Assembly: GCA_038496445.1 (NCBI GenBank)
Contig: JALMLS010000237.1
Coordinates: forward strand, 1-64,000
Direction: 5' to 3'
DNA length: 64,000 nt
From: Trichosphaerium sp. ATCC 40318
Taxonomy: Eukaryota; Protista; Tubulinea
The position numbers and the translations under genes were made by a program. Shown in pieces: positions 6,302-56,931 of the stretch (positions within the stretch are counted from its first letter, which is position 1; the number at the start of each line of letters is the position of its first letter). The notes beneath the pieces were generated by a model. It saw nothing but the letters and a program-made list of their open reading frames with translations. It had not been told where the DNA came from and made no database searches.

Positions 6302-7591
6302 ATGCACAGTGTTACAAATGTGCTTGAATTTCCACCAGAGGTTATTGCGAATATTCTACATCATACAGAAGCAAAAACAAGATTCGCAATTGCTCAATCA
6401 TGTAGTTTGATGGCTGATGTCATGCACGATGTTGTTGGATATGAGGATGTTTATATCAAGCGTGTTCCTGACATTCTTAAGATAAGACAGTACAAGGGGA
6501 TAATGAATAACAGTAGAGTCGTACTTAAAACAAAGGAAAACCATACTTTGTTTTCATTGTTATCTGGGTGTCGCGTAATTGATGCATCTGTAAGTACTAT
6601 TCGCATTACAGATGACGATCTAGAAGAGCTTGCAGGTGTCCATTGTATTGATCTTCATGCTTGTAGCAATGTTACCGACAGAGGTATAGTTGCATTAAAA
6701 GGTGTTCATGCCATAAACCTAGAAGACACTCATGTGACAGATGCAGGTATTAAACAACTCGCTGGTGTTCATACTATTCACCTTCGCGAAACAATTATAG
6801 ATGACGGTGTAATAGCACTTGCAGGTGTTCATAATATAGACCTTACGCTCACTTCAGTGTCAGATGAAGGTGTCAAAGCTCTTGCAGGCGTACATACCAT
6901 TCACCTTGATGGTACTTCAGTGACTGATGAGGGTATCAAAGCGCTAGCAGGCGTTCATAGTATTGATCTTGCTGATACATTGGCAACAGATGAAGCTCTC
7001 ATAGCATTAAAAGGTGTACATGCGATCAATCTCTTTGGCACTAAAGTAACAGATACAGGCATAAAGGCGTTAGCAGGTGTTCATACAATTAGCCTTGATG
7101 GTGTTTCAGTGACTGATGAAGGTATTAAAGCACTTGCTGGGGTTCATACCATTCACCTTGAGGATGCAATGGAGGTTACTGATGAAGGCATCAAATCTCT
7201 TGCAGGGGTACATATGATCGCCCTTGGTGGCACTAAAGTGACAGATGAAGGTGTCAAAGCGCTTGCAGGCGTTCATACCATCGGTCTTACCAATACATTA
7301 GTGACAAATGCTGGTATCAAAGCATTAAAGGGAATCCATGTGATTGATGTTCATGGCACTGAAGTTACAGATGAAGGCATAATAGCTATTTATGGCGTTC
7401 AATCTGCTCATAATATTGGTATTGAGGGTTGCTCAGTACCAAATAGCATAGAGGGACCACAATATGTTAAAGTGGCAAGATTCGAACAATATGAGATGCC
7501 AATTGATTATTGGTTTGATACTTTTTGGAGGCGTATAAAACCAACAAAACAGTATATTTTAAGGCCTTTAAATCCAGTCAGTAACTTGTAA
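6302..7591 (+). CDS. F-box + LRR protein (about 12 repeats of 21-22 aa)
   Basis: N-terminal LEFPPEVIANIL F-box; tandem LAGVHxIxLxxTxVTDEGIKA repeats; coding region has no intron. Confidence 0.9.
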   Translation: MHSVTNVLEFPPEVIANILHHTEAKTRFAIAQSCSLMADVMHDVVGYEDVYIKRVPDILKIRQYKGIMNNSRVVLKTKENHTLFSLLSGCRVIDASVSTIRITDDDLEELAGVHCIDLHACSNVTDRGIVALKGVHAINLEDTHVTDAGIKQLAGVHTIHLRETIIDDGVIALAGVHNIDLTLTSVSDEGVKALAGVHTIHLDGTSVTDEGIKALAGVHSIDLADTLATDEALIALKGVHAINLFGTKVTDTGIKALAGVHTISLDGVSVTDEGIKALAGVHTIHLEDAMEVTDEGIKSLAGVHMIALGGTKVTDEGVKALAGVHTIGLTNTLVTNAGIKALKGIHVIDVHGTEVTDEGIIAIYGVQSAHNIGIEGCSVPNSIEGPQYVKVARFEQYEMPIDYWFDTFWRRIKPTKQYILRPLNPVSNL

Positions 7592-8140
7592 CACACTGCA
7601 GCATAGGCATTACCGCCTTCCATATTCATACGACTAATAGACGTTAGATTAATACTTTGGCTCTAACTAGCCAGGCGTTGTAAAATCCAATTTAATAGTT
7701 GTTAGGTAACTTTTGCATAACTATCCTGGCCGCGAAGTTTGATTGTAAGCACCACGTGATAGTGGGGCAGCACATTTTTTACAATTTGTACAATTTGCCG
7801 ATTGCCTAAAATTAGAGAATTTGCGTGAAAATACATAAAATTACCTTGTATATAAAAAATAAATTGGCAGAACTGGCAATACCTTTTCTCACCACTGTAT
7901 TAACGAAATAAGTTATTACTTCACAGTACTCTATAGTATACCTCATTTTATTGTTACGCTAGCATACGCTAAAGTGTACATACCAAACGGCTGCAATGCC
8001 AAAAGTAGTTAATAACTTACGTGAAACGTTCAAGCTCAGATAAAATTGTCCTCAGGTTAAGCTACTTGATTCAACTTGTACCCTAAACGTCAACCACGAC
8101 ATAATAACGCTACTTACAAGGGCATACTTCAGTTACGTAA

Positions 8141-8204
8141 TTTCCCGCCACTGACGTACAGTTAAGCCACTTATTTTTTTCTCTTCACAACCGCCACTAA
8201 CGTA
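8141..8204 (+). promoter_or_regulatory. Putative E2F site plus duplicated CCGCCACT[G/A]ACGTA motif upstream of TACC gene
   Basis: TTTCCCGC at 8141-8148; 14-nt near-perfect direct repeat at 8145-8158 and 8191-8204, within 90 bp of the ATG. Confidence 0.35.
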
Positions 8205-8230
8205 TACCTAACGCATCTAACACAAACAAT

Positions 8231-9981
8231 ATGGCTACAATAACCGGTGTACGTTAATTGATTAAACACTCATTTCAACAAGATTGCTCAATAACGCTCC
8301 TACAGAATCAAAACGTAGTCATTCAAGCGTTTTCTAGTCCTGGACCTTCTGGTAGCTCTGGACCACTTACAGATATAACAAATACTCCAAGAACGCCCCT
8401 TGGGACTTCAAAGGGTGTTAAAGTGGACCTCGCTCTCGTACGCACTTTTCTACAGTAGCGGTTAATCAGATACATTTAATCTACTGTTTCTGGGACTACT
8501 TGAGCGTTTTAAGCTTTAGTACGCGTAACCGACACTTGGCTGACGGTTTTATAGGATGACGATGTTGGAAGCTTCTTCGCTGAGAACTGGACGCCACAAT
8601 ACGGCGATGACGTGCGTACCAAGAGCATTTAACACATTCCTAAATCCGGACAAAATCTAATAATCGTACCAGAGTCTATCAGAGGAAATTGCGTCTACTG
8701 ACAAGAAACTATACACGCAGGAGCAACTGGACGAACAAGTACAAAAGGTAAGAAAAATCGAAATAAGCACAAAATCATCAAAGCTGCTTTGTAGAGCATC
8801 TATTTACGTTAAAAACAGGCTATCAGTGATGCCAAGGCTCAATATAAATATACTCAAGAAGACCTTGATAAAGCAGTTACCGCAGCGCGAGATGCAGCAC
8901 TTGAACAGGTAAGAGAGAGGGTTACATTTTTTGTTTCTTTTTTATTTCTTCGACTTTTGGGCTTTTTCTTTATTTCTCGCGTATTGTTGCTCATTATTTA
9001 TGTTTGCTAGGCTGCACTTATTGCTAATGAAGCGGAAAAAATGGAAAAAGCGTACCAACAAGCGAATGAAGAGAAAGCGCAGTTGACATCGATGTTGTCC
9101 GAGTATGAGGCCGTTTTATCGAATGTAATGGGTACGTCTTTCTTTATTTTGTGCTACACCACCATGCGATACAGCTGTAATATTTAGTTGCCCTGAAGCT
9201 ACTTTTGCGCCAACGCTAAACTTTTTCTTTCTTGGAATATTCTTTTTTTTTCTCTATTTTTTCGTGTTCATTGTTTGAATTGTGAGCGTTTTTGATGAGT
9301 ATTATTTGCTAGTATCCATGATATAAATATATTCTCGCTTAATCTCACTCAATTGAAGCCACAGAGTTTTATTTTATCTTTTTCCGATCAAACGACTGAT
9401 TCGGTGTATTAATTTGTTTGTTTAGCAAACAATGACTCAAAGGCTTCTTCCGTAAATGCCGTATACGCTCAGAAAGTAACAAATCTTCAGCTCGAGAATG
9501 CTAAACTGAAGCAAGAACATGAAGAAATTGAGAATAGCTTCAAACAACTACACCAACGTTATGAACAAATGAAGCAAATTAACCATAATTTTACAAAGGT
9601 ATAAATTTCTTTGTTCATTGTCACCTTGTTTCTGAAGTACCTCTCTAACACATACCTCTCTAGAACGAAACAGTGCTTAAACAAACATTATCAAAGACAC
9701 AGAATGACCTTATGTCATCTGAAGCTCAATTCCAAACGTTGAAGCAGCATGCCGAAGAAAAACTTCGTGATGCTTCCCGCCAAATTTCAGAAGCTCATTG
9801 GCAAAAAGAACATGTTAGAGCATTACTTACAGGTCGATTAAATCACTTGAAAGCAAGAGTCCGTGTCTCAGAGAATGAATTAAAAGGACAGAAGGAACAT
9901 AACAAGATGTTGGAAAAGATGTTTTCGAATGTATTTAAAGGAGGAGAAGGCAAAAGTGAAGAGAACGTCAAGAGCTCTTGA
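8231..9981 (+). CDS. TACC: TACC-domain (transforming acidic coiled-coil) spindle protein, multi-exon
   Basis: Spliced C-terminus IENSFKQLHQRYEQMKQINHNFTKNETVLK...QFQTLKQHAEEKLRDASRQI matches the TACC domain; KYTQEDLDKAV upstream. Confidence 0.85.
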
Positions 9982-10708
9982 AAAGTTACAAAAAAAAAAA
10001 AGAAGAAAAAAAACCGAAAAAAATTTTGATTGCATGTGGTGGGTATACAAGATGGGTTTTTTGATGAAGTTTCTCTGGTTTCCGTCTTTGAAATTATTAT
10101 CATCCAGGACCATAGATAGCGGATTAAAAAAAAACTGATTATCCGTCACCACACGCTTGAACTTTTTTTTTCTTGTAATTTTAGCCCAAACTACCGTTTG
10201 TTCCATAACATCCGCTTTGGCTCTCCTGTATATGTACATAAGTAAAAATTAGAAATTAGTTAGTCTACTAGTACTGTTTCTTAGAGTAAAGAGCAAATTG
10301 TGAATGAAAAAAAAAGACCTTGTTGCTGTAGATACATGTACCCTAATGTAAAGTTGTGTCAGTTATATGTCCATTATACTGCAAAATATAATCTATTGGT
10401 TGACGGATCTCTTCAATTGTTACAGGCAGGTTGTGAGTTGCGACCAGTTAAGTGAACCGCGAGCTGAATTTTGTTGTTTTAGCAAAATCTCTGCTTTAAT
10501 TTGAATGTATCGGGTATTCATTAATAAGCTTGCTGTGTATTGGTACACCAGTGATAATTTACAACATTACTATAACTACCCGAGATGGAACGCCAACCAC
10601 ACTTCACAACACGATTTGTTTTGCAATCTTTTTTTTTAGGGATGCAAGTTTGGCTCGATTCGTTGAATCTTCCCGTTTTGGAAGCTTTAGTCACCGGAAA
10701 CCAACAAC

Positions 10709-12173
10709 ATGCACGCTGCATCTCTATTTTTTGTTTCTTCTTGTTTGGTCGTATTAACTTACGGGTTTTCTACCAGCGCGATCTCGATATGTCCAGCTAC
10801 AACCACAAATATATGTGCAGTTATGTGTAAAAACGCGTAAGTTGACATAAACCCGCCTTGTAGAGGCCTTGTTTAATACTTTTCTGCTAATACGCTCTTT
10901 AGACCTTCACAGAACCTCGGCGGCTCTCTAACTATCAGTGGTATAATAGGAGAGTACTATATTCCTGGACAGAAATACGTCTTTGGTGTATTTGCAAATG
11001 CAGAACTACCTTACGTTGTACGCACATTTTAGGACTCCATTTACATTAAAACGCTGTTTAGGGAGTAGTTGCATCATTTTATACTGGTGAGGTTGGCCAA
11101 GGAACGATAGCAGGTACTATCAAGTCTGGCACCCGCGAGCTTTCATCTGCATCGTCTGGATTTTCTACGAAACGATGCAGAGGCTCTATCCGTCATACCA
11201 ATGGTAGTACTAAGGCTGGCATACAGTCATTCTATTGGACAGCTCCTCCTGTGGGAACTGGTACTGTAACTCTCGGTGTACGCTAACGTTAACACTAAGC
11301 TTACCAAAACTCCTCGCTTTGAGGGTCAGCTTTATTTTCTGTACTTCTAAGATCTTGTGACGTTGTTCTTACAGTTTTTAACAGGCTTGGATCGTTGCAT
11401 CAAGAAATTCTTCTGGTTGCGTTTGGACTAAAATCGAAAGAGTATACAAGGAACTTCCAAGATATAAAAGTCCTTGCAATGACCCTAAGAGTCTCCCTAT
11501 GTCTTTTAATAAGTTCATGTTCAATATTGATACTATTGAGACGGCTGTTAAAAGCGGAAGCTACAGAGTACAAGAAGGAGATTTACACGATATTGTAAAG
11601 TACCTTAAAGAAGCAAAAACAATTGCAGTTTCTGGAGCTAAAATGTCTCAACGCGCTGCCCACAAGCTCTACAGAAAAGCAGTACAGTGTAAAGCTGTTG
11701 TGAGCAGATGGCATAAGGCTATTGTTGATGGAGAAGAGAGCGACAACCACATTTCAAGAGAGGAATATGGCCATCATGCAAAAGTATTCGGTAGAGTATG
11801 TGATACACTTGATGCTGATTTGGATACCTTCATGGAAGGGTTAGACTGGAACAAAGGGTTTCTGAAGAACATGGAAGAAGCCAAGAATGGTGTTGTTAAC
11901 GTTATCACTTCTTTTGCTGTCGCAAATGATAAATCCGCTAAAAACTTTTGGCACTTTGTTCTTGAACAAATTCTTCAAAATATGCCTTTTGAAACTGCCA
12001 CTTGTCATAAAACGGACATCTACGGCCTCTTTGACTTAGATGATGATACATTAGACGCACTATATGAAGATTTAGAAAGCACAGTCGAAGAACTTGTTGA
12101 TTACAAAGTAGATCTTTTAACAAACACAAAAATGTTGTTTATGTATGCAAAGTATTTGCAATTTATGCAGTAA
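10709..12173 (+). CDS. Secreted Reeler-domain protein fused to an uncharacterised acidic helical C-terminal domain (4 exons)
   Basis: Signal peptide MHAASLFFVSSCLVVLTYG; YIPGQKY and RHTNGSTK...FYWTAPPVGTGTVTL Reeler motifs; last exon from about 11386 runs in frame into ORF 11499-12173. Confidence 0.7.
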
Positions 12174-12479
12174 AAGGCTTTACAAGCAAGAATAAACTAT
12201 AGTTTATGCCCCTACAACATTACACGGTAGTCCTACATAGCTTTTTAGGAATCTTAAGTACAAACAAATTCTACAAAGTTACACGTGCTTCACACGTGCT
12301 AATACAACTTACTGTAGGAAGTGATCTTGACCGCCTTTTGGCGTAGACTTGCTCTCACAACAACAGAAGAATTTCGTTAAACAGCAAAGGTCGTTCAGTG
12401 CAACGCGTACAATAAAGGTGTGGTTAGACAATTCACAATACTTACAACAGAAATGATAAAAAATGAGCCTTTATTATTA

Positions 12480-14222
12480 TTACTTAGGTGGGATGATATT
12501 AGAGCATATCTTAATCTTGGGCAGAAATGCAAACTTTTCCTTTATGGATATTTTAAATATACTAGTATCTGACACAACAGCAAACTCATTGCTATGTTTT
12601 CCTTTAGTAAACTGGTACTTTGTATTACCATCATAAGCAACAAAGTACTCATATCCATTCTCTTCATGTGTCTCAATATTAACAGTATCGAGAGTGAAGT
12701 AAACCATGAATGTCTTAAAAACACTCTCAACAAACTACAAAAAAAGTTATAAAACTATAGATACCACAAGCACGTGCATTTTTCGGAACGGTGCAGTCCC
12801 ATAGGTTCACTTTTAGGCACCCATCTCTGTCTGTATACCAAGAAGATTGTTGTGGTACTCCAAGTCCACACGTAAAAGTAATCATACGTGTTGTACGAGG
12901 CTCATTTTTAGGTGCGAAATATTGAAGTTGCTGCTTTTCAGCATCACGAAATACAATAAAGTCTGGTACAATAGCACCTATAGTACCATCTGTAGTATTA
13001 CCAGTAAAGTTCATGTTTACAACGAGCTTAGATTTAAAACTTGGCGGTGGAACTTCACCGTTAAAAGTGTATTGCTACAAGTTGTTTTTAGCTGTTTTCA
13101 CAATAAAATTAAAAAACCAATATGCCGTACCGGAATAAACGAGTATTTCCTGAAAGGATATAATCTTCTTGGCTCACACAAGTACTTTGCAACATCATTA
13201 TGATTAAACCCACTAGGATCAGCATTAACAGCTTCATTGCGAATAATTGCAGCCGCTTTAGCGGCACATGAAAACAAAGCTAGAACGACAATAAGACCTT
13301 TATGAAAAACAGAAAAAAAATCGACGCACGTGCTGGCATTTTGTATGATACTGCATGACATCTTGCAAAGAAGGTTTGTGCTAAACCAGAAACTGTTATC
13401 TCCTTTCCATCAGATATCAATATCTCCTTTGCTTCCTGTAACTTATACACAGAAGTATGGAAACAAACAGACTCCATTGGGCCACTAATCTGGCAGTATT
13501 CTCCAGAGTATTGTGGCAAAGAACAGCCTCTTGCGCAAGTTCCATTCGCATTGCATTGGTTACCTCCGTTGTATGCACAGGTTTCAGGACATGGAAGGTC
13601 AGTGCCAACATGAATTGAACTTTTCGTGGATATTTTCGATTTTGCGGTTGGTAGGTTTGTAAGACATTTACCGTCTTGAGTACATAGTGTCATATTGTTC
13701 CTTCGTAGCGGGCAGTGTTCAGGACAATCTTTTGAACATTTTTTACCGTAGAGTTTGTTGAAGTAGCATCCCTTGCATACGCCGCTCATGTCGCAATCAG
13801 GAAACGCGCCAGTGTATTGGCACGTTGCTGGGCAACGGTTCTCACATTTTTTTCCATACAGACCTTTGGTGTTAGCGCTGTACGGTTATTAAACATAATC
13901 ACGTACCTGGAGTACACTTGGCACATGTATTGTCGGTTAAGCACTTGAGACACTTTCCAAGACCGCATTTTGATTTATTTGTGCATACACCGGTGTATTG
14001 ATTACATTCAATACAGTTCTGAGCGTCTTTGCATTTAAACTCGCAATTTTGGCCATAGAAGCCATAATCGCATTCAATACAATTATCTTAAAGCGTCAGA
14101 TGTCTTGCACGTATGTATTCTGTACCTTGAACAGGGCATTTTCCTACTCTGCAATTATCGCAGTCCCACTGGGCCGATACAGCTAGTACTACCACGGTTA
14201 ACGTGAATAACGAACTCCACAT
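12480..14222 (-). CDS. Secreted protein with EGF-like Cys-rich repeats and unknown C-terminal domain, multi-exon
   Basis: Signal peptide MWSSLFTLTVVVLAVSA; repeats such as GVCKGCYFNKLYGKKCSKDCPEHC and GTCARGCSLPQYSGEYC; downstream exons join through GT-AG introns. Confidence 0.65.
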
Positions 14223-15321: not shown

Positions 15322-16107
15322 TTAGTCTTTCAATGGAACTTCATATTGTTTTCCGTTCATCATGAAACAATGTTTAATTATAGTTCCATCTTGTCCCCAC
15401 TGTGTGAAAAGCTCAGATAGCTGACCATTAAATAGTGTACAATCTATTTTTATCTGTCCATTACTGTACCACTCTTTGTACTTGCCATTGGATATATTAT
15501 TTACCTTTGTGCATTTCATTTTCATTTGACCATTTCTATGGTACTCCTTGCACTCTCCATTGGTCTTTTTGTTTACCTTTAATTCCTCTTTTGATAGAAC
15601 GCCATTATCATACCAACTTCTATACAAACCATCTTCCATACCATCAACCATTTCAGTTTGAACAGAGAGTGTTCCATTTTTATGCCATAATCTCATTGTG
15701 CCATTTAATCCACCATTAGCAACTGTAAACTCTCTTTCTAGAACTCCATTATCATACCATGTTCTACATAACCCCGTGACAACACCATTGATAGTTGTAC
15801 CTTTGGATTCTAGTTTTCCGTTTGGATGAAAAGAAGACAAATTCCCAGAAGGATATATACTACGTCTCATAACAACACCTGTTTTATACCAAGATATCCA
15901 TTCTCCTTTACGTTCCAGACTCTCATCAAAATGTGTGTTTATTGCTGCTTTCTTTGATAGGGTGTGGAACTTTGTAAAAGCAGATGAGTTGAAAGTACAA
16001 ATATACTGTTGAAGTTCATGTGGTAAGTCAAGAAGACTGTATGATGCAGTCTGTTCTGTACAAAGAACTAATTTTTTACCTGCGATCATCAACTTGTTCC
16101 TTTGCAT
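15322..16107 (-). CDS. F-box + MORN-variant repeat protein
   Basis: LLDLPHELQQYI F-box followed by about 7 repeats of G.xxxW[YH]xNGxL; intronless. Confidence 0.85.
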   Translation of the reverse strand: MQRNKLMIAGKKLVLCTEQTASYSLLDLPHELQQYICTFNSSAFTKFHTLSKKAAINTHFDESLERKGEWISWYKTGVVMRRSIYPSGNLSSFHPNGKLESKGTTINGVVTGLCRTWYDNGVLEREFTVANGGLNGTMRLWHKNGTLSVQTEMVDGMEDGLYRSWYDNGVLSKEELKVNKKTNGECKEYHRNGQMKMKCTKVNNISNGKYKEWYSNGQIKIDCTLFNGQLSELFTQWGQDGTIIKHCFMMNGKQYEVPLKD

Positions 16108-16542: not shown

Positions 16543-19540
16543 TTTTTTTTTTTTGAGGTAAAGCTGGTTTTTATTAATAAAACCTCAGAATGCATTGGTA
16601 GGACCAACAGCAACTAGCGGTGCTTGTACATTATTACAATATTATACTTTTTTTTTTCTTGTTTTTAGTTTTTGTGTTTGTGCTCTATTCCACATATGAG
16701 CTAAGCCATACTGATCGGTTTCTTGTACGGACTGGTGTGGATGGCGCCAACCTTGCTTTAGGTACTGGTGTACCATCTGGAAGGATGTGTGAGATCTCGT
16801 GACCCACTGCAAACGCGCCCTCGTTATATTGGAGGCGCTCCAGAAGAGCTGACGGATTTTTGTAAGCCGGCTCAAAAGGCGTGTAGTCGTGACTGTAATT
16901 GGGGTCAAACACCCAATACTCTATATTGTCGTTAAAAACCGCCCAGGGGGGTGGCTTGATACCGTCATTGATATTGACAGCCAATAAATAATACTTCTTG
17001 AACCTAAACCTGACCTCCTTTGAAGTCAGAAGTGTACCACCGTACTTGATATCATTACGTGACTTCCAGATGATGGACATAACTATAGATATAGCCAGCA
17101 ATGCTGAGACGTCACCATCGTAGCTGAACAAAGTATCCAGACCCCACTCACCATCTATCAAAAACGATGTAAGATCCTCTAACAAAGCAGCGATAGCCAA
17201 AGCAGGCTTCCACTCCCAAAATACAGCTTCGTGCTTTTCAGGGGGTCTGGCCAATTTCCTATGAGTAACCGGAAGCACACGCATAAGGTACCGCCATAAC
17301 ACATCTCTGGGATGATTACAACCTTTAACACACCTAAGTGAACCAACAATGTACTTGTAATTGTACAATTTGAAAGCCTCAACTACCGAGGGTCTGGTGA
17401 CTGGCACCTTTGTATATTTGCCATAGTCGCTAAGTATTCTACCTACTTTGCGATACTTGCCTGCAGTGCCCATCATGTTACATCCGATTTTCTTCCATTC
17501 CCGCTCACACTTAGCACCAATATCAGACGCACCTGTCACCCACAACTCTTTATAAGTAGGGGATTCCAGACAAGCACGCTCCCATAGCGAGGCCTTGAAT
17601 GCACTAGACGCCATTGTTATGAACTGGAAACCTATACCACCCTCTTCTGCTGGTAGCCCAGCCTGCTCCCATGTCATGGCAGGTCTGTGCTGCTTTGAGT
17701 CGTCATAACAGACCCCTGCCTCCCATAAAAACCATGAATAAGCCTTTGACAACCTATTAACTAACTTTCGTGGAAATTTGAAAGGCCTAGCAAAGTACAG
17801 TAACTTTGACTGCGCATAAGTGCGCAATACATTCACCTTCTGCCTCAATGTGCTCATCATGGGCTTCCACTTGACAAGGTGACCAGTGATGCGCTCCACA
17901 GCAGCGTCCCAATCATAAGACAAACCACTGCTTGTGAAACTAAAACCTAAGTACTTTTCACCTGCTGCAGGCGGATTGAACACCCTTTCTATGTTACCAA
18001 CCACATTAGCTTGATGACACTTATCTGGATGGGATGTTAGCCCTGTGGCCAATCCGAATCTTGTTATGACACCAACTGCTGCATGCAAGCTACCTGAGTC
18101 ACGAACAATGAGCATTAAATCATCTGCAAAGAACTGATTAGTGGTGCAGCTGCCATCAGGCAGCTGAGCTCCCCGTATCTTAGAGCTAGATTGCAGAGCA
18201 ACATTCAGCGGCTCCACCAGTAGAGCAAACAGGAATGGGCTAAGCGGATTACCTTGTCCAGTACCTCTCTCTGTGTTGAAGGTAACCTGAGAAGTGGACC
18301 CATTAATCTTAATCCGTACAGATAATTTCAAAGACGCTATAAGCATATTGACAAAGCTATTGTCAAGACCTAAGTGTTGGAGCACCCTGGCTAAGGCCTT
18401 ATGGCTGCAAGAGTCAAACGCCTTTTTGAAATCAAAAGCTATCAAAGAGAGAGCTTTCTTGCTATTTGTGTGAGAGCTAACTGCCTCACATACATTGATG
18501 ACGTTGTCCACTATGTCACGTCCAGGTATAAATCCATTTTGAGAACTGGAGATAACTTCACTCATCATTGGAGCAAACCTATTGTACAAAACCTTCATGA
18601 AGATTTTATAGTCAGAGTTTAACAACGTGATAGGTCTATAATTGGAAAGGTCTCGTGGATCACCCTTTTTAAATATAGGGAGGACAGTACCATCACAAAA
18701 GTATGCTGGAACCTTTCCTTTTTCTAGAAAGGAGTTATAAAGTGCTGTCAAAGGCACTGCAACATCAGACGCTGTATCCCTATACACAAACATACCAAGT
18801 CCGTCAGGGCCTGGAGACTTGTATTGGGGTAAGCTTTGTATGGCTGTGACCACCTCTTCAGGTGTGATCTTAGCTTGTATATCCTCTAAGTGCTTGAAGG
18901 CCAAACTAACATCCCACTCCTCCAAAAAAGAGTTAAGGACTTCTTCATCACTCACCACTTGACCATAAAGGTCTCCATAGAACTCAGCAGCAATATCTTG
19001 CATCTCTTTGACATCTGTGGATGATACAGAGTCCCATGCTCGCCGGAGTTCCTTGACTGTGAGACTGCAAGCTCTACCACAAAGTAATTTAGTCAAATAT
19101 GGAGTAGGTACCTCCTCTTTAATTGCACGTTTGGCGCCTGAAATTATAGACTTGTACACCTTGCGTTCCAACACCAATTCTTCGTACTCTTGGATCCACT
19201 CATCTGGAACCCAGGTAGCTGCTGATATCATAATAGCCAGAGAAACTCGCCTATCAATGGTGGCTTTGAGACCTTCACTCTGTAAGCCAGCCAATGCCTT
19301 AACCAGCCACTCTTTGCGTTCTTCATATGAGTTGACATCATCACTTTGGCAGTAAGTGCCACCAGCGACCACCGGAGCTATCTTAGAGCGCTGCCACCAG
19401 ACAGGATTGGCACGCCAATCCTTGGCTGGAGCTTTAGGAGCTCCTATCACGACTTCTAGCATTTTGTGGTCTGTACCAAGATGATCTGCATTAAGCACAC
19501 CAAAGGACGTAACCCTGTCAATTAACTTTGCTTGCACCCA
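16543..19540 (-). mobile_element. 5'-truncated non-LTR retrotransposon (APE-type, L1/Tx1-like)
   Basis: Poly(A) tail (T12 at 16543-16554 on +) preceded by AATAAA; perfect 16-bp TSD; uninterrupted ORF; visibly higher GC than flanks. Confidence 0.95.
16685..19540 (-). CDS. LINE ORF2 remnant: end of APE endonuclease + reverse transcriptase + C-terminal domain
   Basis: LIDRV...GTDH (APE C-terminus), KSPGPDG, NYRPITLLNSDYKI, QNGFIPGR, DFKKAFD, GTGQGNPLSPFLF, FADD, KYLG, IWKSRN. No true start codon; the track start lies inside the TSD. Confidence 0.95.
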   Translation of the reverse strand, partial: WVQAKLIDRVTSFGVLNADHLGTDHKMLEVVIGAPKAPAKDWRANPVWWQRSKIAPVVAGGTYCQSDDVNSYEERKEWLVKALAGLQSEGLKATIDRRVSLAIMISAATWVPDEWIQEYEELVLERKVYKSIISGAKRAIKEEVPTPYLTKLLCGRACSLTVKELRRAWDSVSSTDVKEMQDIAAEFYGDLYGQVVSDEEVLNSFLEEWDVSLAFKHLEDIQAKITPEEVVTAIQSLPQYKSPGPDGLGMFVYRDTASDVAVPLTALYNSFLEKGKVPAYFCDGTVLPIFKKGDPRDLSNYRPITLLNSDYKIFMKVLYNRFAPMMSEVISSSQNGFIPGRDIVDNVINVCEAVSSHTNSKKALSLIAFDFKKAFDSCSHKALARVLQHLGLDNSFVNMLIASLKLSVRIKINGSTSQVTFNTERGTGQGNPLSPFLFALLVEPLNVALQSSSKIRGAQLPDGSCTTNQFFADDLMLIVRDSGSLHAAVGVITRFGLATGLTSHPDKCHQANVVGNIERVFNPPAAGEKYLGFSFTSSGLSYDWDAAVERITGHLVKWKPMMSTLRQKVNVLRTYAQSKLLYFARPFKFPRKLVNRLSKAYSWFLWEAGVCYDDSKQHRPAMTWEQAGLPAEEGGIGFQFITMASSAFKASLWERACLESPTYKELWVTGASDIGAKCEREWKKIGCNMMGTAGKYRKVGRILSDYGKYTKVPVTRPSVVEAFKLYNYKYIVGSLRCVKGCNHPRDVLWRYLMRVLPVTHRKLARPPEKHEAVFWEWKPALAIAALLEDLTSFLIDGEWGLDTLFSYDGDVSALLAISIVMSIIWKSRNDIKYGGTLLTSKEVRFRFKKYYLLAVNINDGIKPPPWAVFNDNIEYWVFDPNYSHDYTPFEPAYKNPSALLERLQYNEGAFAVGHEISHILPDGTPVPKARLAPSTPVRTRNRSVWLSSYVE

Positions 19541-19556
19541 GGTCTTACTCAAAGGA
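19541..19556. repeat. Target-site duplication, 5'-truncation-side copy
   Basis: GGTCTTACTCAAAGGA, identical to 16527-16542. Confidence 0.95.
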
Positions 19557-21486: not shown

Positions 21487-22543
21487 TCACATTTTTAATG
21501 CAGCAAGACCTCTTTGTGTAACTGAAGTGCCCACAGTGTAAAGTGTATGAACACCTCTAAGTGATTTAATACCCTCGTCTGTAATATTTTTACAACCCAT
21601 CATATCAATATAATGGGCACCAGACAGTGCTTGTATACCTTCATCAGTAATGTTTTTACAACCAGCAAGGTCAATAAAATAGACACCAGACAGTGCTTTT
21701 ATACCTTCATCTGTAATGTTACAACCCATCAGACGAACTGTATGAACTCCTGAAAGAGCTTGTATCCCTTCATCTGTGATATGGTTACAATATGAGACCG
21801 TAATAGTATGTACTCCAGCAAGCGCTTTAATACCTTTATCTGTTACATTAACACCTGAAAGATTAATTGCATGAACACCAGAAAGAGCTTGTATCCCTTC
21901 ATCTGTTATATTTGTACACCGGAGATCAATATCGTAGACTCCAGAAAGAGCTTTGATGCCTTCATCTGTTATGTTCATACAACCTTGAAGGTTGATGGTG
22001 TGGACTCCAGAAAGTGCTTTTAACCCTTCATCTGCTACGTTTGTATAATCTAGATCTATGGTGTGAACACCTGAAAGAGCCTTTATCCCTTCATCTGTAA
22101 TTTGTTTACAATATGAGAGTGCAATGGTATGTACTCCAGCAAGTGCTTTAATACCTTCATCTGTTACACTTTCCATACATCCGCAAAGATAAATATCATT
22201 CACACCAGCAAATGCTTTAACAATATCCGCAGATACGGATCGTCCAACAATTGCGATTTTTGTATGTTGGAGAGTAGTAGGATATTTTAACACTGCTTTG
22301 GCTTGCGATATAGATGAAACGCGGACGCTATAGTATCCGACAATATCGTGAACAATAGAAGCAAGGCGACGGCACGTTTGACAAGCTGCAAACCTTGCTC
22401 TAGTAATTTGACGTAAAATATGTGCTAAAATCTCTGTAGGGAGGTCTAACACGTTTTTTGGTGCGCTAGTGTGAGGTTAGCACGCTTGAATAGGCAATTT
22501 ACTCATACGTTTGCGCTTTGGCGTTTAATCTCTTATTTAACAT
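21487..22543 (-). CDS. F-box + LRR protein (about 11 repeats) with one short 5' intron
   Basis: ATG 22543 and intron 22466-22508 (GTATGA...CTAAC...TAG) restore the frame into NVLDLPTEILAHIL; repeats LSGVHxIxLxxCxxITDEGIKA. Confidence 0.88.
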
Positions 22544-22719
22544 TACAGGCTTGTAGTTTAGTGGCTGTCAAGCGATTTGGCGGAGATAAACCATGTCACG
22601 CAAACATCACGTGATATAAACTTTTTAAGCTGCCTTAATCAGCAAGCAGGATACGAAGCACGAAAATGTACGAATTTGTTAGCACACGTGCTTGTAAAAT
22701 AATAAGAAAAAAACAAGTA

Positions 22720-43682: not shown

Positions 43683-45254
43683 ATGAACTCAAACAGCGCT
43701 TTCTTTGATGAGATTCCAGTTGAAATCATTATTCATATTCTACAGTTTGCTTCCGTGCTATCTATTCGTTTAGTAGCGCGTACATCTAAATTACTATCCA
43801 GCGTTACCATACAACACTTGCTGTGTGATAATAGGAAAACTATACCGATAAATACAAGAAAAAAGCTTAGAACTCTATTCAAGACAGCTCCGTACCTTAT
43901 AAAGAAACATACTCTTATCCTGAAATACTCTATCAAACAAAAAGACTTAAAGTACCTACAAGGTGTTTACGGTCTTAAATTGAAGGCGGAGTTGACAAAC
44001 AAAGTTGATTTTAAACGCTTACAGGTGGTTGATTGTATTGACTTAACATGGTGTAGCAAAGTGACTAATGATCATCTTAAACAACTTGCTGGTATACATA
44101 AAATTCTATTACGTTCTTCATATGTTACAGATGAAGGTGTGATTGCATTAGCTGGTGTTCATACAATTGCTATACGTGCCGCAAAAGTTACAGATGTTGG
44201 TGTTAAAGCATTAGCACTTGCTGGAGTTCATACGATTGATATTAGCAACTGTTATTTCGTTACAGATGCTGGTGTTAAAGCACTGGCACAAGCAGGTGTT
44301 CATTCTATTTCTTTAAGGTTTTGTACTGTTACTGACAAAGGTATCAAAGCCTTGGCTGGAGTACATAAACTTAATCTCTCAGGCACAAAAGTTACAGATG
44401 ATGGTATTAAATCATTGGCTGGTGTTCATACGATTGTACTAGACAATTGTGGGTCTATAACAGACGAAGGTGTAAAAGCGTTGGCTGGGGTTCATGCCAT
44501 TGATTTACTTGGGTGTAATGTAACAGATGACAGTATTAAGGCTCTTGCTGGTGTACACACAATTTATTTACGTGCTTGTATTCAGGTTACAGGTGATGGC
44601 ATTAAAGCACTCGCTGGTGTTCACAAAATTAATCTGCGTGGTACTAAAGTTACAGATGAGGGTGTTGCAGCTTTAGCTGGTGTACATACAATTGATTTAA
44701 GTGGTTGTAGTACTATAACAGATACTGGCATTAAAACATTATGCGGTGTTCATTCCATTAATGTAAGTGGTTGCAATATTACAGACGAAGGCATTAAACC
44801 TTTAGCTGGTGTCCATACAATTAATTTAAATGGCTGCAATGTAACAGATGCTGGAATTAAAGCACTCTCTGGTGTCTATAAAATAGATATTGGTTACTGT
44901 GATCAAATTACAGATGATGGTATTAAGGCATTAGCTGGTGTTCATGAAATTGGTTTACGTTGTTGTAGAGTTACAGATGACGGGGTTAAAGCATTAGCTG
45001 GTGTTTATTCGATTGACTTAACCAATTGTACAGGGTTAACAGATGAAGGTGTTAAAGCTTTAGCCGGTGTTCATAAAATAGAACTTATAGCATGTAATCA
45101 AATTACTGATGATGGTGTGGCAGCATTGGCTGGCGTATATTCAATCAATGTACTGTATTGTGAACGTATTACCAAAAAGGGCATCAAAGCTTTAGGTGAT
45201 GCTGATATTATAGGTAGAGAAGACTCTGAAAGGATATCATTGTTAAACTCATAA
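43683..45254 (+). CDS. F-box + LRR protein (about 19 repeats)
   Basis: FDEIPVEIIIHILQF F-box; tandem LAGVHxIxLxxCxxTDxGIKA repeats; coding region has no intron. Confidence 0.9.
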   Translation: MNSNSAFFDEIPVEIIIHILQFASVLSIRLVARTSKLLSSVTIQHLLCDNRKTIPINTRKKLRTLFKTAPYLIKKHTLILKYSIKQKDLKYLQGVYGLKLKAELTNKVDFKRLQVVDCIDLTWCSKVTNDHLKQLAGIHKILLRSSYVTDEGVIALAGVHTIAIRAAKVTDVGVKALALAGVHTIDISNCYFVTDAGVKALAQAGVHSISLRFCTVTDKGIKALAGVHKLNLSGTKVTDDGIKSLAGVHTIVLDNCGSITDEGVKALAGVHAIDLLGCNVTDDSIKALAGVHTIYLRACIQVTGDGIKALAGVHKINLRGTKVTDEGVAALAGVHTIDLSGCSTITDTGIKTLCGVHSINVSGCNITDEGIKPLAGVHTINLNGCNVTDAGIKALSGVYKIDIGYCDQITDDGIKALAGVHEIGLRCCRVTDDGVKALAGVYSIDLTNCTGLTDEGVKALAGVHKIELIACNQITDDGVAALAGVYSINVLYCERITKKGIKALGDADIIGREDSERISLLNS

Positions 45255-45814
45255 TAAATAAATAAGACTGTGAACAAGAAGTTTTACTAAAAATCTCTCA
45301 TTGCACTAGAACCATTCTTTTATGGCGTTTGTGTAAAATTAGCCTTTGACATTAGGCCAGAGAAAATGTTTCTCTAGTTTAGTATTTCGTAAGAGGGGCA
45401 CGTGATTTTTTAATGAAATACTTTTTTCTGTAGCTTTTATTGTTTGAGCGATAGGTTCTGTTGGTTGCGTACTTCCTTACTTACTAGTATGGACAATGCA
45501 CTTTTCAAAACACCCTCAAACCCTTGTAGTAGCTAGTTACATGTACGAGAACGGTATAGGTGATGTTTTGGTTTGTGAAACGTTGTATTAAAATTCTGTT
45601 TTCTGCGTGCTTGTAGATTATTTGAAAAAGTGTCAGTAGGCTAGAATGTCTAACTTCGTTTCTTCTCTGACGTGTGCACCGATAAGAAACAGTTTAAAGG
45701 TCTACAAGGCAGAAAATTCAGGGAAAAGAGCCAAAACTTTCCTTGTTTGAGAGCAACGTCATCAAAAGTGCCACGCTATTTATTATATTGTAAAACAAAT
45801 ACAGATCAAGCAAC

Positions 45815-51329: not shown

Positions 51330-51850
51330 GATCCTTGTTACATTCAGAGAATACGGATTGAAGATTACTGTTCAGTTATTGCGATTTGCCATTGTGTAGT
51401 CGAACTTGGTTGCTAGTGCTTGGGCCAAACAACACCTGGAATACAAATTTTTTCATTAAAGGGCGAGTAGAAAGTGTAGTGGGATATTTCATATGAAACC
51501 AACAAAAATTTTGTCGGAAAACCTCTTTTCTCTCCTCCTCAACCCATAGTTAGTTCCTCATGTTGTCCATTCTCATACCATACTTTACTTACGCTGTGTT
51601 GTTTATCATTTTGTACCATTGAATCCTCATTCCTTTATGTTGCAATGTTTCATTAAAATGTTAAAAGGGAAAATCTGCAAGTGTTTTTTTCTCAATAAAT
51701 ACTGCATAATCTTCCCCGGTTGGAATATCCAGAGAATAACCCAATTTAACATATTTGTTTCGGCTTCGTAACATCAGACTGAAGTAAAATATGGTAGAAC
51801 TGTATTTTATCGAAGAAATCCTGGTATCTATTGACAAAACTGGCATTGGA
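51330..51850 (-). pseudogene. Decayed MORN-repeat gene, paralogous to 15322-16107
   Basis: HFNETLQHKGMRIQWY (compare HFDESLERKGEWISWY) and KVWYENGQ lie in different frames with stops between them. Confidence 0.55.
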
Positions 51851-52436: not shown

Positions 52437-52495
52437 TATGTATTTGGTTATCCTTAGCGATTAAAAAATGATAGAGACTATGAGGACGATTTTGC

Positions 52496-52984
52496 CTACC
52501 TCCACCTAACTGGACGTTCTACACATTTAATACCCAATGACTCAATACCTTCACGTGTTATATCACAATACTCACCAATTTCAACAACCTTGAGCGACTT
52601 CATATACAATTCAAACGTTCATATACTAAACATAACAATATAATGTGATACTTCCAATTCTTCAAGGTTTACTAGTTTCTTCATACCTTCATCTGTAATG
52701 TCGAATAAACGAGCAAGTACTAGCTTTTTGACATTTTTCAACTCGACGATACCTGCATCTGTTATATCTCCGCTTAACTGAACCGTATGGACATTTGCGA
52801 GGTGTTTAAGCCATGAATCTTTTGCGTCCCACACTGTAATCTTATGTACACCCTTGAGTGCTTCTATACCTTTAACAGTGCAGCCAAATCTTGACTTATT
52901 CTTGTTGGACGTTCGAACTTTCCACGAAGAATACATGTACGCGTAGTAGTATCTCCGGATAAACCATTGCAAATTAGGCAACAT
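52496..52984 (-). pseudogene. Truncated LRR gene related to the F-box-LRR family
   Basis: GIEALKGVHKI, LANVHTVQLSGDITDAGIVEL, ITDEGMKKL and ITREGIESL repeats; no F-box, and the 3' frame is broken or spliced. Confidence 0.6.
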
Positions 52985-53473
52985 GCCAGTTTTGACTTGC
53001 AGACATTAATGGGGACGTACTCTAATTTTATTAGTTAGGCTATGCACATGCTCTAATTTTCTGATTTTAGACCATTATTGGCAGTACTTTTCATAGTCAC
53101 GTGTTTAGAAAAGTACCATTCTGTTAACAGTAATTTAAACGCAAAACAGCCATTGGTAACTTGTGAAACAAGAAAAAGAAAGTGGTAGCTCGATCACATG
53201 TTGACACCGAAACTGCCTAAACCCCTTCACATCAGAATTGCCCACTAAACTTACAATGCTGGCTTTGTATTTCTTATCAATGTTGTTACCTCTGATGTCA
53301 ACTGCCAAAGGGATTAGGTTCAAAGACAATCCTTATGCCAATTCTGTCACGAGGATAGGTGCGTGCAAGTTGTAGTTAATTATGTTTATTGAACTAAGTT
53401 ACATGATAGATGTCGTTACGTATGAAGATTGCAGTGTTTGCGTGGAGGTGCGAAACTGTGAATACAATGATTT

Positions 53474-54512
53474 TTACATGGTTTTTATGTTCTTCCTTGC
53501 TTTTCTTTTGCCCATAAAGGTATAGTATACACTTGAGGGAGTTGGTATCATTGCTGGGACCTCTTTTCTGTAAGTTTTATAAGATTCACCCCATACAGCA
53601 ATGAGTTTTTCTTCTTCGTGAGGGATTGCGAAATAAAGATAAACTACAATCAATGATACAAATAATAGCTTGTCACCAGTCATTATGGGAGAGACCATAA
53701 TGCTTGTTACCAGGCTAAAGTACATTGGATGACGAACAAGACCATAATAGCCTGTTGTGAGTAGTGTGCCAATAGCACGATCAGAGCATGTATCATCAAA
53801 TTCCTTATGTGTGGCACTAAGCTGAGAGAGACCAAAAAATACCTAAAAATCGTATTAGAATTTGGTGGGGAAAACGTGTTTGTTGCATACCATTAAGTCA
53901 AATCCGAAAAGAGATGTTCCAAAAATGATAAATCCAAGCACCAAAGTATAAATTTCTCTAAAAGCGCTTGTTAGCCACTAATCTACTATATTAAAATTTT
54001 ACATACGTGTTTGAATCTGTACCATCGATGATCCAAATGTCAATTCCAATTCTTTGCCAAAGTACCATAACAAGGAAAGCTGACCAAACTGCGAATACTG
54101 AAAATATCATACGTGTTAGTTGCTTGTAAAGTATCTAAGAACAAAAATGTCAGTCATGAAGATCAAGAAAGCATGGAAAAAGAAAGGTATATCTAGCAAT
54201 TGAATTTACAAGCTAATTAAATCTTTATAGAAGTACCTTGCTGATAACTGCTTGAATACTTTGCTTGGCTAGTAATGAATGTAGAAGACCCCACGTGAGA
54301 TACAGAGTTGTATTGAACAGAATTTTTTGAAGTACAGATGTTAATCCAAGATCAATGTTGATCGCTATTGGGATGAAGCTAGGCAAGTTCATACCCAGAA
54401 AAAACCAGGCAAAGAACGATAAAAACGTAGGCGCTGATAATGCCATGAGGATGTATCCTGTAATCTGACATAACAATGGCATTCGCTTTGTTTCGAGGAG
54501 ACTTGTTTCCAT
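53474..54512 (-). CDS. Nurim/MddA-like membrane protein (isoprenylcysteine carboxyl methyltransferase superfamily)
   Basis: WGLLHSLLA, VLWQ, FFGLSQ, GYYGLVRHPMY and EEEKL...YKTYRKEVP motifs. Confidence 0.8.
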
Positions 54513-55442
54513 GTGGTTTGTTGTTAGTAGATTTGTTATTTATGTCCTTGGTTGCTCAAAGTCTATTAGCATAATGGTTGCATACTTACTTCGCGAAGAT
54601 CCACGTGCTTCTCTGGACAGCACGATATTTCGGAGTTGAAAGCCAAAATTAGCTTAATGAACACATAATAAAATTGTTCACGTTTTTTGAGAATGTACTT
54701 AAACTGTTGCTTATAGCTCGTGCAAGCAAAATTACTTGTAGAACTAACTCTGCTACCTGAAAACCATGTCAGGATGTACTAAACGGACGAAACAGTAATG
54801 TTCAATGAATATTCTCTGAGTCACATTTTTTCACGCACGTGCGGTTTCTAAAAAGCTTTCCCAAAATTAGTGTACGGCAAATCAATTGCTTTCTCCAAAA
54901 TGTTGGTCGAGTTTTAGCGATGTAGACGTTCGCTAGGCACGTGCTTTTGAAAAATATAAAAACACCTTGTATTTGTACGCTACAGATTCAATGCTACCCA
55001 GCACGTCATGAATACTTGTAGGGTTGTATGATATTTAACCGTACGAAAACGTTACATTAATCTTTTATTAGACCACTGGACTTTTGCCACTCGTAGTAGT
55101 TTCCACGATTCAACTTATTACCAGAGCGGTTGACAAAATCACGTCAAAAATTGTTAAATGCACTTTGTATTGCGTTTGTACAAGTGCACGACTGGTTACT
55201 TCAACATAGACCTTAATTACAAACGGACAAACATGTAAAAAAGAAAGATCTCAGGCATGGTTTGTCCGATGACTGATTTCTTCATTCGTTATTGTGACCA
55301 TTCATTTTCTACAGATTTTATTGATACAACAGTTTCAAGATTTGCAATGTTTTTTAGTATAGTTGTTTAGTGATCATAAGTCTATCTAGATGCTCGTTTA
55401 CATTTTTTTGTTACACGGTTTTTTTTATCTTCTTGCGTCTTT

Positions 55443-56931
55443 TTAATCAGAATCAACAGACTCAGGACCATCAGAAGAAGGCTCAGAATCTTGCCCAGAA
55501 CAAGAATAATCAGAGCTTTGGCTATCACCTTTACACTCTAATGGGGAAAAGATGAGAAAACACAAACCAGCTCATTGAATAAAACTTGAGATTGAAATTG
55601 TTTTTTCTTGATTTCTCTTTTGTATTATAATTTATTCCAAAAAAGAACGTACCAGGACATGCATCACCATGCGCACAATTAAGACAAACCAACTCTCCGC
55701 ACTTCTCGCAATTTTTACCACATTTTGGAACACAAACATTAAAATCACAGAAATTACACAAATCAGCGTCTGCACCACCACATGTTTCGCATTTTACCAT
55801 AAAATCTCGACCACCACATGTAGGACATTCAGCGCACCTTGCACATTCATGACATGCATTTGTACCACATTTCTTGCAGTCTTCAATACAACTATTGCAT
55901 ATCTTCCTGTCAACTTCTTCACATAATGCTATAGCACATGTCTTTATACAAACACGACATATTCTATCACTACAACGTGTGCATCCTTCTATACATACTG
56001 CGCAAGTTACTTTATCACATGCAGCACATACTTGATGACAACCTAGAGTATAATAAGTGAGATTTGTGCAACAACAGGCCAAGAAAAAAAAAACAAAACA
56101 GAAAAAATAAAAAACGAGGTTAGAAAACCACTTTAGTTCCATTTGTTAGTTTGTGGCAATTCTACACGCGTGTGTGAATACATTAAAAGCGATTTAATAA
56201 ATAAAGGTTAAGCTGTAGGCGTAAAGATATTTTTTCATAAAAATCCGTAAAACAGCGTTTTGTTGTTTGTGGTAATTCTATACGCGTGTGTGTATACATT
56301 GTACGCTTTTTTAAAGCTGATAGTTACGCTGTAGCGTTATAAAAACCTTTTTTCAGAAAATAAATGCGAGATTGACACTACACCTTTGCATGCGAATCCA
56401 ATTGCTTCTGCTTCGTCATGTATGGCACAAAATGATCCAGCTGCCACACAATTTGTGCAAAAGTATTTTTTACATCCTCTACAACGGTCCCAAAGCAGTT
56501 TGTTTTCTGTACATTGAGTACAAGCCCTACCAATTTGGTTACGTCCTTTCAATACTCGTGAGGGCTTTTATCAACTTCGAGCACCATAAAACGGTGGTTA
56601 TGATCTAGATATGATGAACGTACTCTCCATAGAGAACGCAAATGCGTTTTGTTGGGATTTTGTCCGCACTATCGTATTTCAAGTCCAATCGTGCCGTTTC
56701 TTTAATAGATTGTAGTGTTACGCCCTTGGGTAGAGTTTTGGATGAAAATAAATGCAGCCATAGTTTTTCATCATCGCAAACGCTGTACAAGTGTTTTGAT
56801 ACCAATGCAGTGTGACACAGATCATTTGGAGCAACACGCATAAGCACCTGTACTAAAACGTTGTCTGGGAGCTCGACAAGCGTTTTAGGGCTAAAAGTGA
56901 CATCTGTAGCAGGTCGCTTTGTCTCCTGCAT
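55443..56931 (-). CDS. F-box protein with long CxxC-rich (B-box-like) repeat region (4 exons)
   Basis: LVELPDNVLVQVL...VSKHLYSVCDDEKLW F-box; dense CxxC array; acidic Ser-rich tail; TAA at 55443. Confidence 0.8.
56144..56368. repeat. Intronic tandem duplication, period about 116 bp
   Basis: Cores 56150-56184 and 56266-56300 match at 32 of 35 nt; flanks are more diverged. Confidence 0.8.

Follow-up and report, generated by a model that had tools for sequence, protein, structure and literature searches.

A dispersed family of F-box and repeat-module genes in the nuclear genome of Trichosphaerium sp. ATCC 40318 and its kinship with giant-virus proteins

The window analysed here is a stretch of 64,000 nucleotides of the amoeba Trichosphaerium sp. 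ATCC 40318 (assembly GCA_038496445.1, contig JALMLS010000237.1, positions 1 to 64,000). An earlier reading of the bare sequence, called the original prediction below, had noticed in it five genes in which an F-box is followed by a module of leucine-rich repeats (LRR; genes A, B and C), MORN repeats (gene D) or CxxC pairs (gene E), and had taken them for an immune-like recognition system. It is probable, at roughly 0.72, that these genes belong to a large, dispersed, lineage-specific expansion of substrate-receptor genes for SCF (Skp1, cullin, F-box) ubiquitin ligases in an amoebozoan nuclear genome. From what is known of such families, the N-terminal three-helix F-box would dock on Skp1-Cul1-Rbx1, and the C-terminal module would recruit bound proteins and present them for ubiquitination. 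The substrate module of A, B and C would be a solenoid of 21-22-residue 'GVHTIxLxxCxxITDEGIKAL' LRR units, and that of E a zinc-type CxxC array. The copies would be long-resident cellular genes, because they combine host-like composition, cellular neighbours, spliceosomal introns (shown in E and probable in A) and an F-box and linker known only from amoebozoan transcripts. Closest relatives differ in the length and order of their LRR arrays, and some copies seem to be dying. On present evidence this is a well-formed but ordinary expansion of F-box adaptors. The additions made here are corrected gene models for A and B, and the result that the repeats, and not the F-box, are shared with giant viruses.

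F-box domains and repeat modules of genes A to E

A Pfam scan of the open reading frames (ORFs) was combined with a hidden Markov model (HMM) of the repeat unit, which was run on the window alongside manual parsing of the units. The three LRR genes predicted at 6302, 21487 and 43683 were confirmed by LRR_6 matches with E values of 1.4e-13 (A), 3.2e-33 (B) and 3e-43 (C). Their tandem period is 63-66 nt, or 21-22 residues, the parsed units follow the pattern V-H-x-I-x-L-x-x-[CT]-(x)-x-[VI]-T-D-E-G, and LRR_6-type features (LxxLxLxxC, ITDxG turn) are found in all three. The HMM counts 14, 11 and 18 units in A, B and C and finds nothing above noise elsewhere in the window except one relic, while manual parsing gives 12-13, 11 and 17-19 units, with 12, 11 and 17 of them clean. 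The predicted variation in repeat number (about 12, 11 and 19) thus holds. The predicted gene boundaries stood only in part and were corrected for A and B.

The LRR reading frame of gene A was first listed as 6302-7591 on the forward strand. Transcript-derived relatives (P0012, P0003 and P0007) have about 90-140 additional N-terminal residues, and a probable exon 1 of 87 codons was found at 5804-6064(+), encoding an N-terminal extension that starts with MSFPGVSVKQAITYY and is collinear with the N-termini of these three relatives. It would be followed by an intron of 228 nt at 6065-6292(+), which is bounded by GT..AG and holds several in-frame stops at a point where the homologues run straight through, and then by exon 2 at 6293-7591(+), with the F-box at about 6323-6427, the linker and 12-14 LRR units of 20-22 aa (6635-7393). 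When 5804-6064 is joined to 6293-7591, one open frame of 519 codons results. The start of gene A thus very probably lies at 5804, with an added exon and the 228-nt intron. An exact-product look-up found no entry for gene A, and likewise none for its relative P0161.

Gene B was extended to 21487-22506 on the reverse strand. The frame given by the ORF tool, 21487-22452(-), starts at GTG; the homologue P0004 starts with MSKQHTLTVHQSAPMLELPTEIL, and the matching frame of gene B contains ATG-AGT-AAA at 22506. The corrected model contains an in-frame TAA at 22477-22479, the F-box at about 22342-22449 and 11 LRR units at 21490-22206, and its F-box-like match of 27.8 bits passes the cut-off of 24.3. 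An AlphaFold (AF2) model of gene B has a mean predicted local distance difference test score (pLDDT) of 92.7 and consists of helices at residues 5-14, 16-25 and 27-37, followed by eleven strand-helix turns that form an LRR solenoid. The model thus predicts a three-helix F-box fold packed on a substrate-binding domain. Its top Foldseek matches in the PDB are FBXL2-SKP1 (6o60_C, E 3.8e-15, query template-modelling score TMq 0.78) and FBXL17-SKP1 (6w66_B); the RipG4 LRR and LegL1 are also among the PDB matches.

Gene C occupies 43683-45254(+), with the F-box at about 43704-43811 and 17-19 LRR units at 44091-45197. The F-boxes of A and C are recognisable only through a family profile, called A2, built from the N-termini of genes A, B and C and their relatives. 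In the PDB this profile matches almost exclusively F-box chains, with E values from 1.4e-5 to 1e-3: FBH1 (1.4e-5), FBXW7 (1.6e-5), Legionella AnkB (4e-5), FBXL17 (1e-4), FBXL5, cyclin F and FBXL3. Because the A2 profile matches F-box chains and the model of B matches FBXL2 and FBXL17, sequence profile and fold both mark A, B and C as SCF adaptors of the FBXL type, as had been predicted, with binding to Skp1 to be expected. Their N-terminal domains are 16-26% identical to each other, and the proportion of synonymous differences (pS) between the genes is 0.64-0.75, which suggests old paralogues with no recent duplicates.

Gene E is a transcript-verified gene for an F-box protein with a CxxC array. 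It spans 55443-56931(-) and encodes 311 aa in four exons (56931-56623, 56525-56382, 56040-55653 and 55537-55443), with the F-box at about 56746-56874 (F-box-like E 4.6e-11, 42.7 bits). The three introns, 56526-56622, 56041-56381 and 55538-55652, are all GT..AG on the reverse strand and are spliced out in contigs from three RNA runs (X4, X1 and X5), in agreement with the gene predicted at 55443. The product has about 20 CxxC pairs (44 Cys) and an acidic and Ser-rich tail in an intact frame. Its Cys-rich part could be assigned to no family of Pfam, the PDB or the Atlas and is an unclassified domain. Two tandem units of about 80 nt were seen by eye in the 341-nt intron 2, at 56142-56340(-), with the pattern '...acagc..taac...tacacacacgcgt.tagaatt.ccacaaac.aaca'.

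Gene D, at 15322-16107(-), encodes a MORN_2 protein with the array at about 15340-15918, and the predicted MORN-variant gene was recovered with MORN_2 (PF07661) at E 7.5e-25 and 84.5 bits against a cut-off of 29.6. The protein consists of tandem 22-23-residue MORN-variant beta-hairpins. In its AF2 model the beta-hairpin array covers residues 64-256, where most 10-residue blocks have a pLDDT of at least 90, with a dip to 53-78 around residues 181-210; residues 1-63 have a pLDDT below 50. The N-terminus carries 'LLDLPHELQQYI', an F-box-like motif that is unproven as an F-box.

Two decayed copies lie in the window, both of them expected from the original prediction. A MORN_2-like relic was located near 51530-51660(-), where 'IQWYK..' and 'KVWYENGQ' are read in two frames with stops, and tblastn with gene D gives a weak match (E 0.024). 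An LRR relic at 52496-52984(-) is a degenerate repeat of the A/B/C type with 'KGVHKITV', 'NVHTVQLSGDITDAGI' and 'DITDEGMKKL' and a 'NVHTVQL' motif. It is weak but real: the unit HMM matches three units at 52622-53005 (E 0.007) and LRR_4 gives E 0.045, with one in-frame stop and no F-box upstream. A contig derived from RNA run X5 aligns with 52640-52880 at 96% identity, beyond which it diverges, and it therefore represents a paralogue or strain variant of the relic. A contig of 1861 nt from run X1 matches 52880-53643 at 90-95%, with joints at 52936/52978 (41 nt, GT..AG), 53013/53121 and 53358/53423. Gene E is 99.6-100% identical in the same runs, while the contigs over 52640-53643 diverge, which points to a diverged paralogous locus or a fast-evolving region. 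Within this region, the ORF 53474-53725(-) ends in a 'HEE..L...G..Y..Y...VP' pattern, which we take to be reminiscent of isoprenylcysteine or phospholipid methyltransferases.

Array turnover, selection and kinship with giant viruses

The closest relatives allow the docking module and the repeats to be compared. The F-box and linker of gene A are 69% identical to those of P0012, with synonymous divergence dS 0.68 and nonsynonymous divergence dN 0.21, and those of gene B are 62% identical to those of P0004 (dS 1.06, dN 0.25). The resulting dN/dS of 0.24-0.31 suggests that F-box and linker are under purifying selection. The repeats behave differently: P0012 and P0004 have 5-6 of them, against 12-14 in A and 11 in B, and the repeat identity matrices are without a diagonal, both at the variable positions and at the nucleotide level. 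Between closest relatives, the length and order of the LRR arrays thus change faster than the docking module, and this gives mild support to the idea of swappable, variable arrays. The birth-and-death part of the original prediction fared less evenly, for the two relics, the stop in gene B and the remodelled arrays agree with it, but A, B and C are old paralogues, and no recent duplicates or tandem copies that would indicate ongoing birth and death were found in the window.

A nearly fixed scaffold with changing x positions had also been claimed, and the contrast itself is present. Over 40 parsed units, entropy is 2.6-3.6 bits at x4, x6, x8, x9 and the first loop residue and 0-1.4 bits at most other positions, with 2.2 at the acidic position after TD and 1.9 at the last residue of the unit. 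However, the x positions are not free to change, and the presumed concave face is biased, with His fixed in 34/40 units, Thr at x4 in 17/40, Asp or Asn at x6 in 22/40 and Gly at x9 in 18/40. The same profile of conserved and variable positions is found in giant-virus-like proteins and in other amoebozoan transcripts; the pattern is thus a property of the repeat type, viral members included, and of LRRs generally. Diversifying selection at the x positions, a further part of the original prediction, was not borne out. Synonymous sites among the repeats are saturated within and between genes (pS 0.57-0.76), and the ratio of nonsynonymous to synonymous differences (pN/pS), read against this saturated pS, is 0.74-0.82 at variable codons, below 1, and about 0.3 at scaffold codons. 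These data show that the repeats are old and free of concerted evolution; because synonymous sites are saturated, they give no evidence for or against positive selection.

The predicted kinship with giant-virus F-box/LRR and MORN families is well supported. Among 5.8 billion proteins, the best matches to gene B are found on dense AT-rich contigs of 28-29% GC, and the genes on these viral-like contigs include Rpb10, thymidylate synthase and a RING protein, or topoisomerase IA, HtrL and a homing endonuclease. On one giant-virus-like contig, L001 (JGI Ga0456317_000017), two adjacent LRR genes, P0002 and P0008, lie at 10001-13042 next to Rpb10, the RING protein and thymidylate synthase, and carry a 22-residue 'NVHTLNL..C..ITDEGIKHL' subtype; their common N-terminus, 'FIIQEIQEYIPFDIYN', has no Pfam F-box match. 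In a Foldseek search of gene B against viral models (BFVD), the top match is a Tupanvirus soda lake F-box protein (E 7.5e-25), and further matches come from Hyperionvirus, Catovirus, Mimivirus LCMiAC01, Pithovirus LCPAC and Harvfovirus, the closest at 26-41% identity. Gene D matches viral models of MORN proteins from Pithovirus LCPAC, Hyperionvirus and Orpheovirus. The nearest Atlas cluster for B is Nucleocytoviricota F-box/LRR_6, with a Chlamydiota LRR cluster as a structural neighbour, and D lies nearest to Nucleocytoviricota MORN_2 clusters, 10-19% of whose members have an F-box. Taken together, there is strong evidence for a common origin of the LRR and MORN repeat types and the Nucleocytoviricota F-box/LRR and MORN families (Klosneuvirinae, Tupanvirus and Pithovirus-like).

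This kinship is real but has already been published. Tekle et al. (2023; PMC10521059) described the draft genome of Trichosphaerium sp., with a GC content of 37.69% and a mean intron length of 75 nt, and reported 1,581 gene models of 'giant virus origin' in which F-box and MORN are the commonest domains; Table S3 of that paper has at least 139 mentions of 'F-box'. According to the same paper, the virus-like genes are dispersed between normal eukaryotic genes, many of them with 0-2 introns, and the donors that it names are the same viruses that give the best matches of the window genes. The window genes probably belong to the same gene family and genome. The overall GC content of the window (37.5%), its short introns and several very small RNA runs (X1-X3 and X7, 6-18 million letters) also fit this draft genome; Cochliopodium minus was rejected as the source on account of its GC content of 26%.

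The shared part is narrower than the published reading would suggest. An exhaustive profile search with the F-box and linker of the A/B type returned 11 proteins at E<=1e-10 among 1.84 billion representatives; the sequences of ten of the 11 were read, and all ten have the same amoebozoan-type architecture. The F-box and linker of A and B were not found in viral proteins by this search. A word-based search with the F-box and linker gave two matches. The best viral-like matches have a different N-terminus without a Pfam F-box; between the virus and amoeba groups, the N-termini lack homology and the repeats show no positional alignment. Scans of IMG/VR with single proteins gave one distant locus in a giant-virus metagenome-assembled genome (GVMAG) for B and no match for the gene D protein, and back-translated TDEGIKAL occurs in 12 stretches of IMG/VR DNA with one match each, which was taken as chance. 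As judged from these searches, only the repeat module appears to be common to amoeba and viruses, and a simple virus-to-host transfer is therefore weakened.

The direction of exchange can then be read in two ways. That an old amoebozoan F-box/LRR family was captured and expanded by giant viruses to hijack the host SCF, as in poxvirus PRANC, Legionella AnkB and Ralstonia GALA/RipG, is a serious possibility, though it falls short of an even chance. It is consistent with an amoebozoan-specific F-box and linker that appear to be under purifying selection, with introns and host-like composition, with canonical FBXL2 and FBXL17 as the closest cellular structural matches, and with the presence of the pathogen mimics Legionella AnkB, RipG4 LRR and LegL1 among the PDB matches. 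Against it stand the poor alignment of repeat proteins, the large excess of viral members in current databases, and the relatives P0012 and P0004, which may be orthologues from a different species or paralogues within one species. The published alternative, in which repeated lateral transfer from giant viruses (Mimiviridae/Klosneuvirinae and Pithovirus-like) was followed by spread, and the copies are viral legacies, we consider slightly less likely. In its favour, sequence, language-model features and fold all place viral proteins nearest to the LRR and MORN modules among known relatives, and the result that Tekle et al. (PMC10521059) report from their alien-index analysis agrees; moreover, C and D are single open frames, as is B apart from its 5' end. 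This reading has to contend, however, with an F-box and linker for which no viral counterpart was found by the exhaustive profile search, with the other, F-box-free N-terminus of the best viral-like matches, with the chance-level occurrence of TDEGIKAL in IMG/VR, with a GC content of 35-41% in the window genes against about 28% in the viral contigs that carry their relatives, and with homologues in other amoebozoan transcriptomes, including Clydonella. In addition, amoebozoan genomes are scarce in the databases, which biases the alien index. Since only the repeats are shared, and composition and introns are host-like, capture by viruses from the host has a probability no lower than that of the published virus-to-host reading.

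The immune-like function in the original prediction is a separate matter. It would make the genes a diversifying, birth-and-death repertoire of intracellular receptors in which the concave LRR face recognises viral or endosymbiont proteins and delivers them to the proteasome. The family is large and dispersed, its array lengths and variable residues show no positional match between closest relatives, yet F-box and linker remain 62-69% identical, and there are relics, a copy possibly disrupted by a nonsense codon (gene B), relatives in giant viruses that would fit an arms race or mimicry, and a precedent in C. elegans and plants. What speaks against such a repertoire is the lack of a positive-selection signal (pN/pS 0.8 at variable positions, where synonymous sites are saturated), the invariant His and biased Thr, Asp/Asn and Gly at the candidate concave positions, the recurrence of this pattern in viral proteins, which makes it a scaffold property, and the ancient divergence of A, B and C with no recent duplicates in the window. 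We therefore regard it as improbable. If it were true, the family would be a protist case of ubiquitin-ligase-based immunity facing giant viruses, and the counting of 'viral' genes in amoebal genomes would change. Still harder to credit is a full arms race, in which the host F-box/short-LRR family tags viral or endosymbiont proteins, viruses have captured the repeats to decoy or redirect the ligase, and the published transfer of more than 1,000 genes from viruses to the amoeba is largely a host-to-virus flow misread through database bias.

Several observations weigh against the preferred reading of the window genes as an expansion of SCF substrate receptors. Taken alone, the F-boxes of A and C score 14.4 and 15.2 bits, under the Pfam cut-offs for F-boxes (PF00646/PF12937). 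Gene B has no intact ATG-initiated frame, as the TAA follows codon 9, and it may be a pseudogene; it is either a young pseudogene or a gene that loses the stop within a 57-nt intron. For gene D, no F-box was detected by Pfam at E<=5, and nothing relevant was found by phmmer against the PDB, while an hhalign comparison of A2 with single N-termini lacked sensitivity even on its positive control, the F-box of gene E. The points in favour are the 'LLDLPHELQQYI' motif and an F-box+MORN_2 relative, P0138, and gene D may or may not retain an F-box. Because the F-box of gene D is undetected, four F-box genes (A, B, C and E) are supported in the window instead of the five originally predicted. The RNA-run comparison covered the gene E region, and transcript support is confined to gene E. 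In part 1 of Table S3 of PMC10521059, the rows after approximately the first 26 viral-type candidates list 0-2 introns and are marked as not detected in the transcriptome. The weakest reading, that the LRR and MORN copies are mostly non-functional debris of decaying duplicates or viral insertions with frames open by chance, could draw on the stop in gene B, the two relics and these Table S3 rows, but it is very improbable in view of frames of 429, 523 and 261 codons that remain open in a 37% GC genome, a scaffold conserved at pN/pS 0.3 though synonymous sites are saturated, the dN/dS of 0.24-0.31 on F-box and linker, and the confident, regular solenoid of the gene B model.

Chromosomal setting of the family

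The window is part of a protist nuclear chromosome. GC content is 35-42% along the whole 64 kb (37.5% overall), long ORFs are few, and ordinary eukaryotic genes are broken up by introns. The predicted scattering of the F-box-type genes between cellular genes was found, with intron-split neighbours encoding Aa_trans (an amino-acid transporter), TACC_C, TauE and a C2H2 zinc finger, plus a retrotransposon. The latter is a non-LTR (long terminal repeat) reverse transcriptase of the long interspersed nuclear element (LINE) type, a 955-codon ORF at 16685-19552(-) with RVT_1 at E 8.6e-29, located between the MORN gene D and gene B. A viral genomic context, that is, hallmark genes, dense intron-free ORFs and viral composition, was not found in the window, and no viral family was found among the scanned ORFs, which included only a minority of those under 150 aa.

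Two other origins of the family genes were considered and rejected. Their GC content at third codon positions (GC3) is 0.21-0.29, compared with 0.26-0.38 in other ORFs of the window, and foreign composition was rejected because these values lie inside or just below the host range. The retrotransposon ORF at 16685-19552(-) has a GC3 of 0.445, clearly above that of every other ORF in the window (0.21-0.38). Retroposition would explain why the family genes are mostly intronless, but it was rejected because poly(A) tracts are absent from the 3' flanks and gene A has a probable intron.

The octamer CACGTGAT has 19 sites in the window against 1.4 expected from shuffles, often as the palindrome ATCACGTGAT. 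Example sites are 4417-4426, 5444-5451, 22606-22615, 29212-29221 and 45399-45406. The octamer is often intergenic and near gene ends; one site lies 360 nt upstream of gene A exon 1, and the palindrome occurs 100 nt upstream of the gene B ATG. It is probably a general promoter element of the genome and not specific to F-box genes. Two Cys-rich ORFs, 13280-13789(-) and 57963-58684(+), have no Pfam family, one of them with a signal-peptide-like start, and possibly encode secreted or surface proteins. A 340-codon ORF at 1056-2078(+) has a weak C2H2 (zf-met) match, and its C-terminal 'LPREIFDIIFDLV' is superficially F-box-like, with no match from the family HMM.

Comparison with known systems

The closest cellular counterparts are the FBXL receptors (human FBXL2, FBXL17 and Skp2), in which, as in A, B and C, an N-terminal three-helix F-box is followed directly by a curved LRR solenoid. 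As in cysteine-containing LRRs, the units of the window have Cys or Thr at the 'N9' position and an 'ITDxG' turn. Repeats of FBXL proteins and cysteine-containing LRRs are usually about 26 residues long, whereas the units of the window have 21-22 residues, a shorter subtype in common with giant-virus proteins, and start with a nearly invariant Gly-Val-His. Other differences are the family-specific linker 'HD[IV]VGY...' after the F-box, the probable extra N-terminal exon in gene A, and the number of genes, very many dispersed paralogues in the window family in contrast to about 20 conserved FBXL orthologues.

The giant-virus families (Tupanvirus, Hyperionvirus, Harvfovirus, Catovirus, Pithovirus LCPAC and Orpheovirus) have in common with the window the 22-aa LRR subtype 'xVHTLxLxxCxxITDEGIKxL' and MORN_2 arrays, and F-box+MORN_2 architectures occur in the viral clusters. 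Unlike them, the window copies are surrounded by intron-bearing genes on a cellular chromosome, and at least one or two of the copies are themselves interrupted by introns. Tekle et al. (PMC10521059) used best hits and the alien index to class such genes as transfers from viruses to the host and read them as cell-cycle related; their paper contains no repeat anatomy, no analysis of F-box and linker and no selection analysis.

The idea of F-box proteins as immune receptors is not new but an established hypothesis from nematodes and plants. The F-box (FBA/DUF38) and MATH-BTB families that are expanded in Caenorhabditis and plants were proposed to be innate-immune receptors (Thomas 2006, as cited in PMC5392922). 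As described there, these families resemble the window genes in comprising many lineage-specific cullin-adaptor genes, hundreds in their case, with a conserved ligase-docking domain and a fast-changing substrate domain; for them, both positive selection at specific sites and induction by virus and microsporidia have been documented (PMC5392922). The substrate modules of the window (LRR, MORN and CxxC) differ from theirs. Finally, bacterial effectors, such as the Parachlamydiaceae expansions, Legionella AnkB/LegL and Ralstonia GALA/RipG, also have an F-box and/or LRR_6-type repeats and use them to engage the host SCF, but these are secreted mimics, whereas the genes of the window are eukaryotic nuclear genes.

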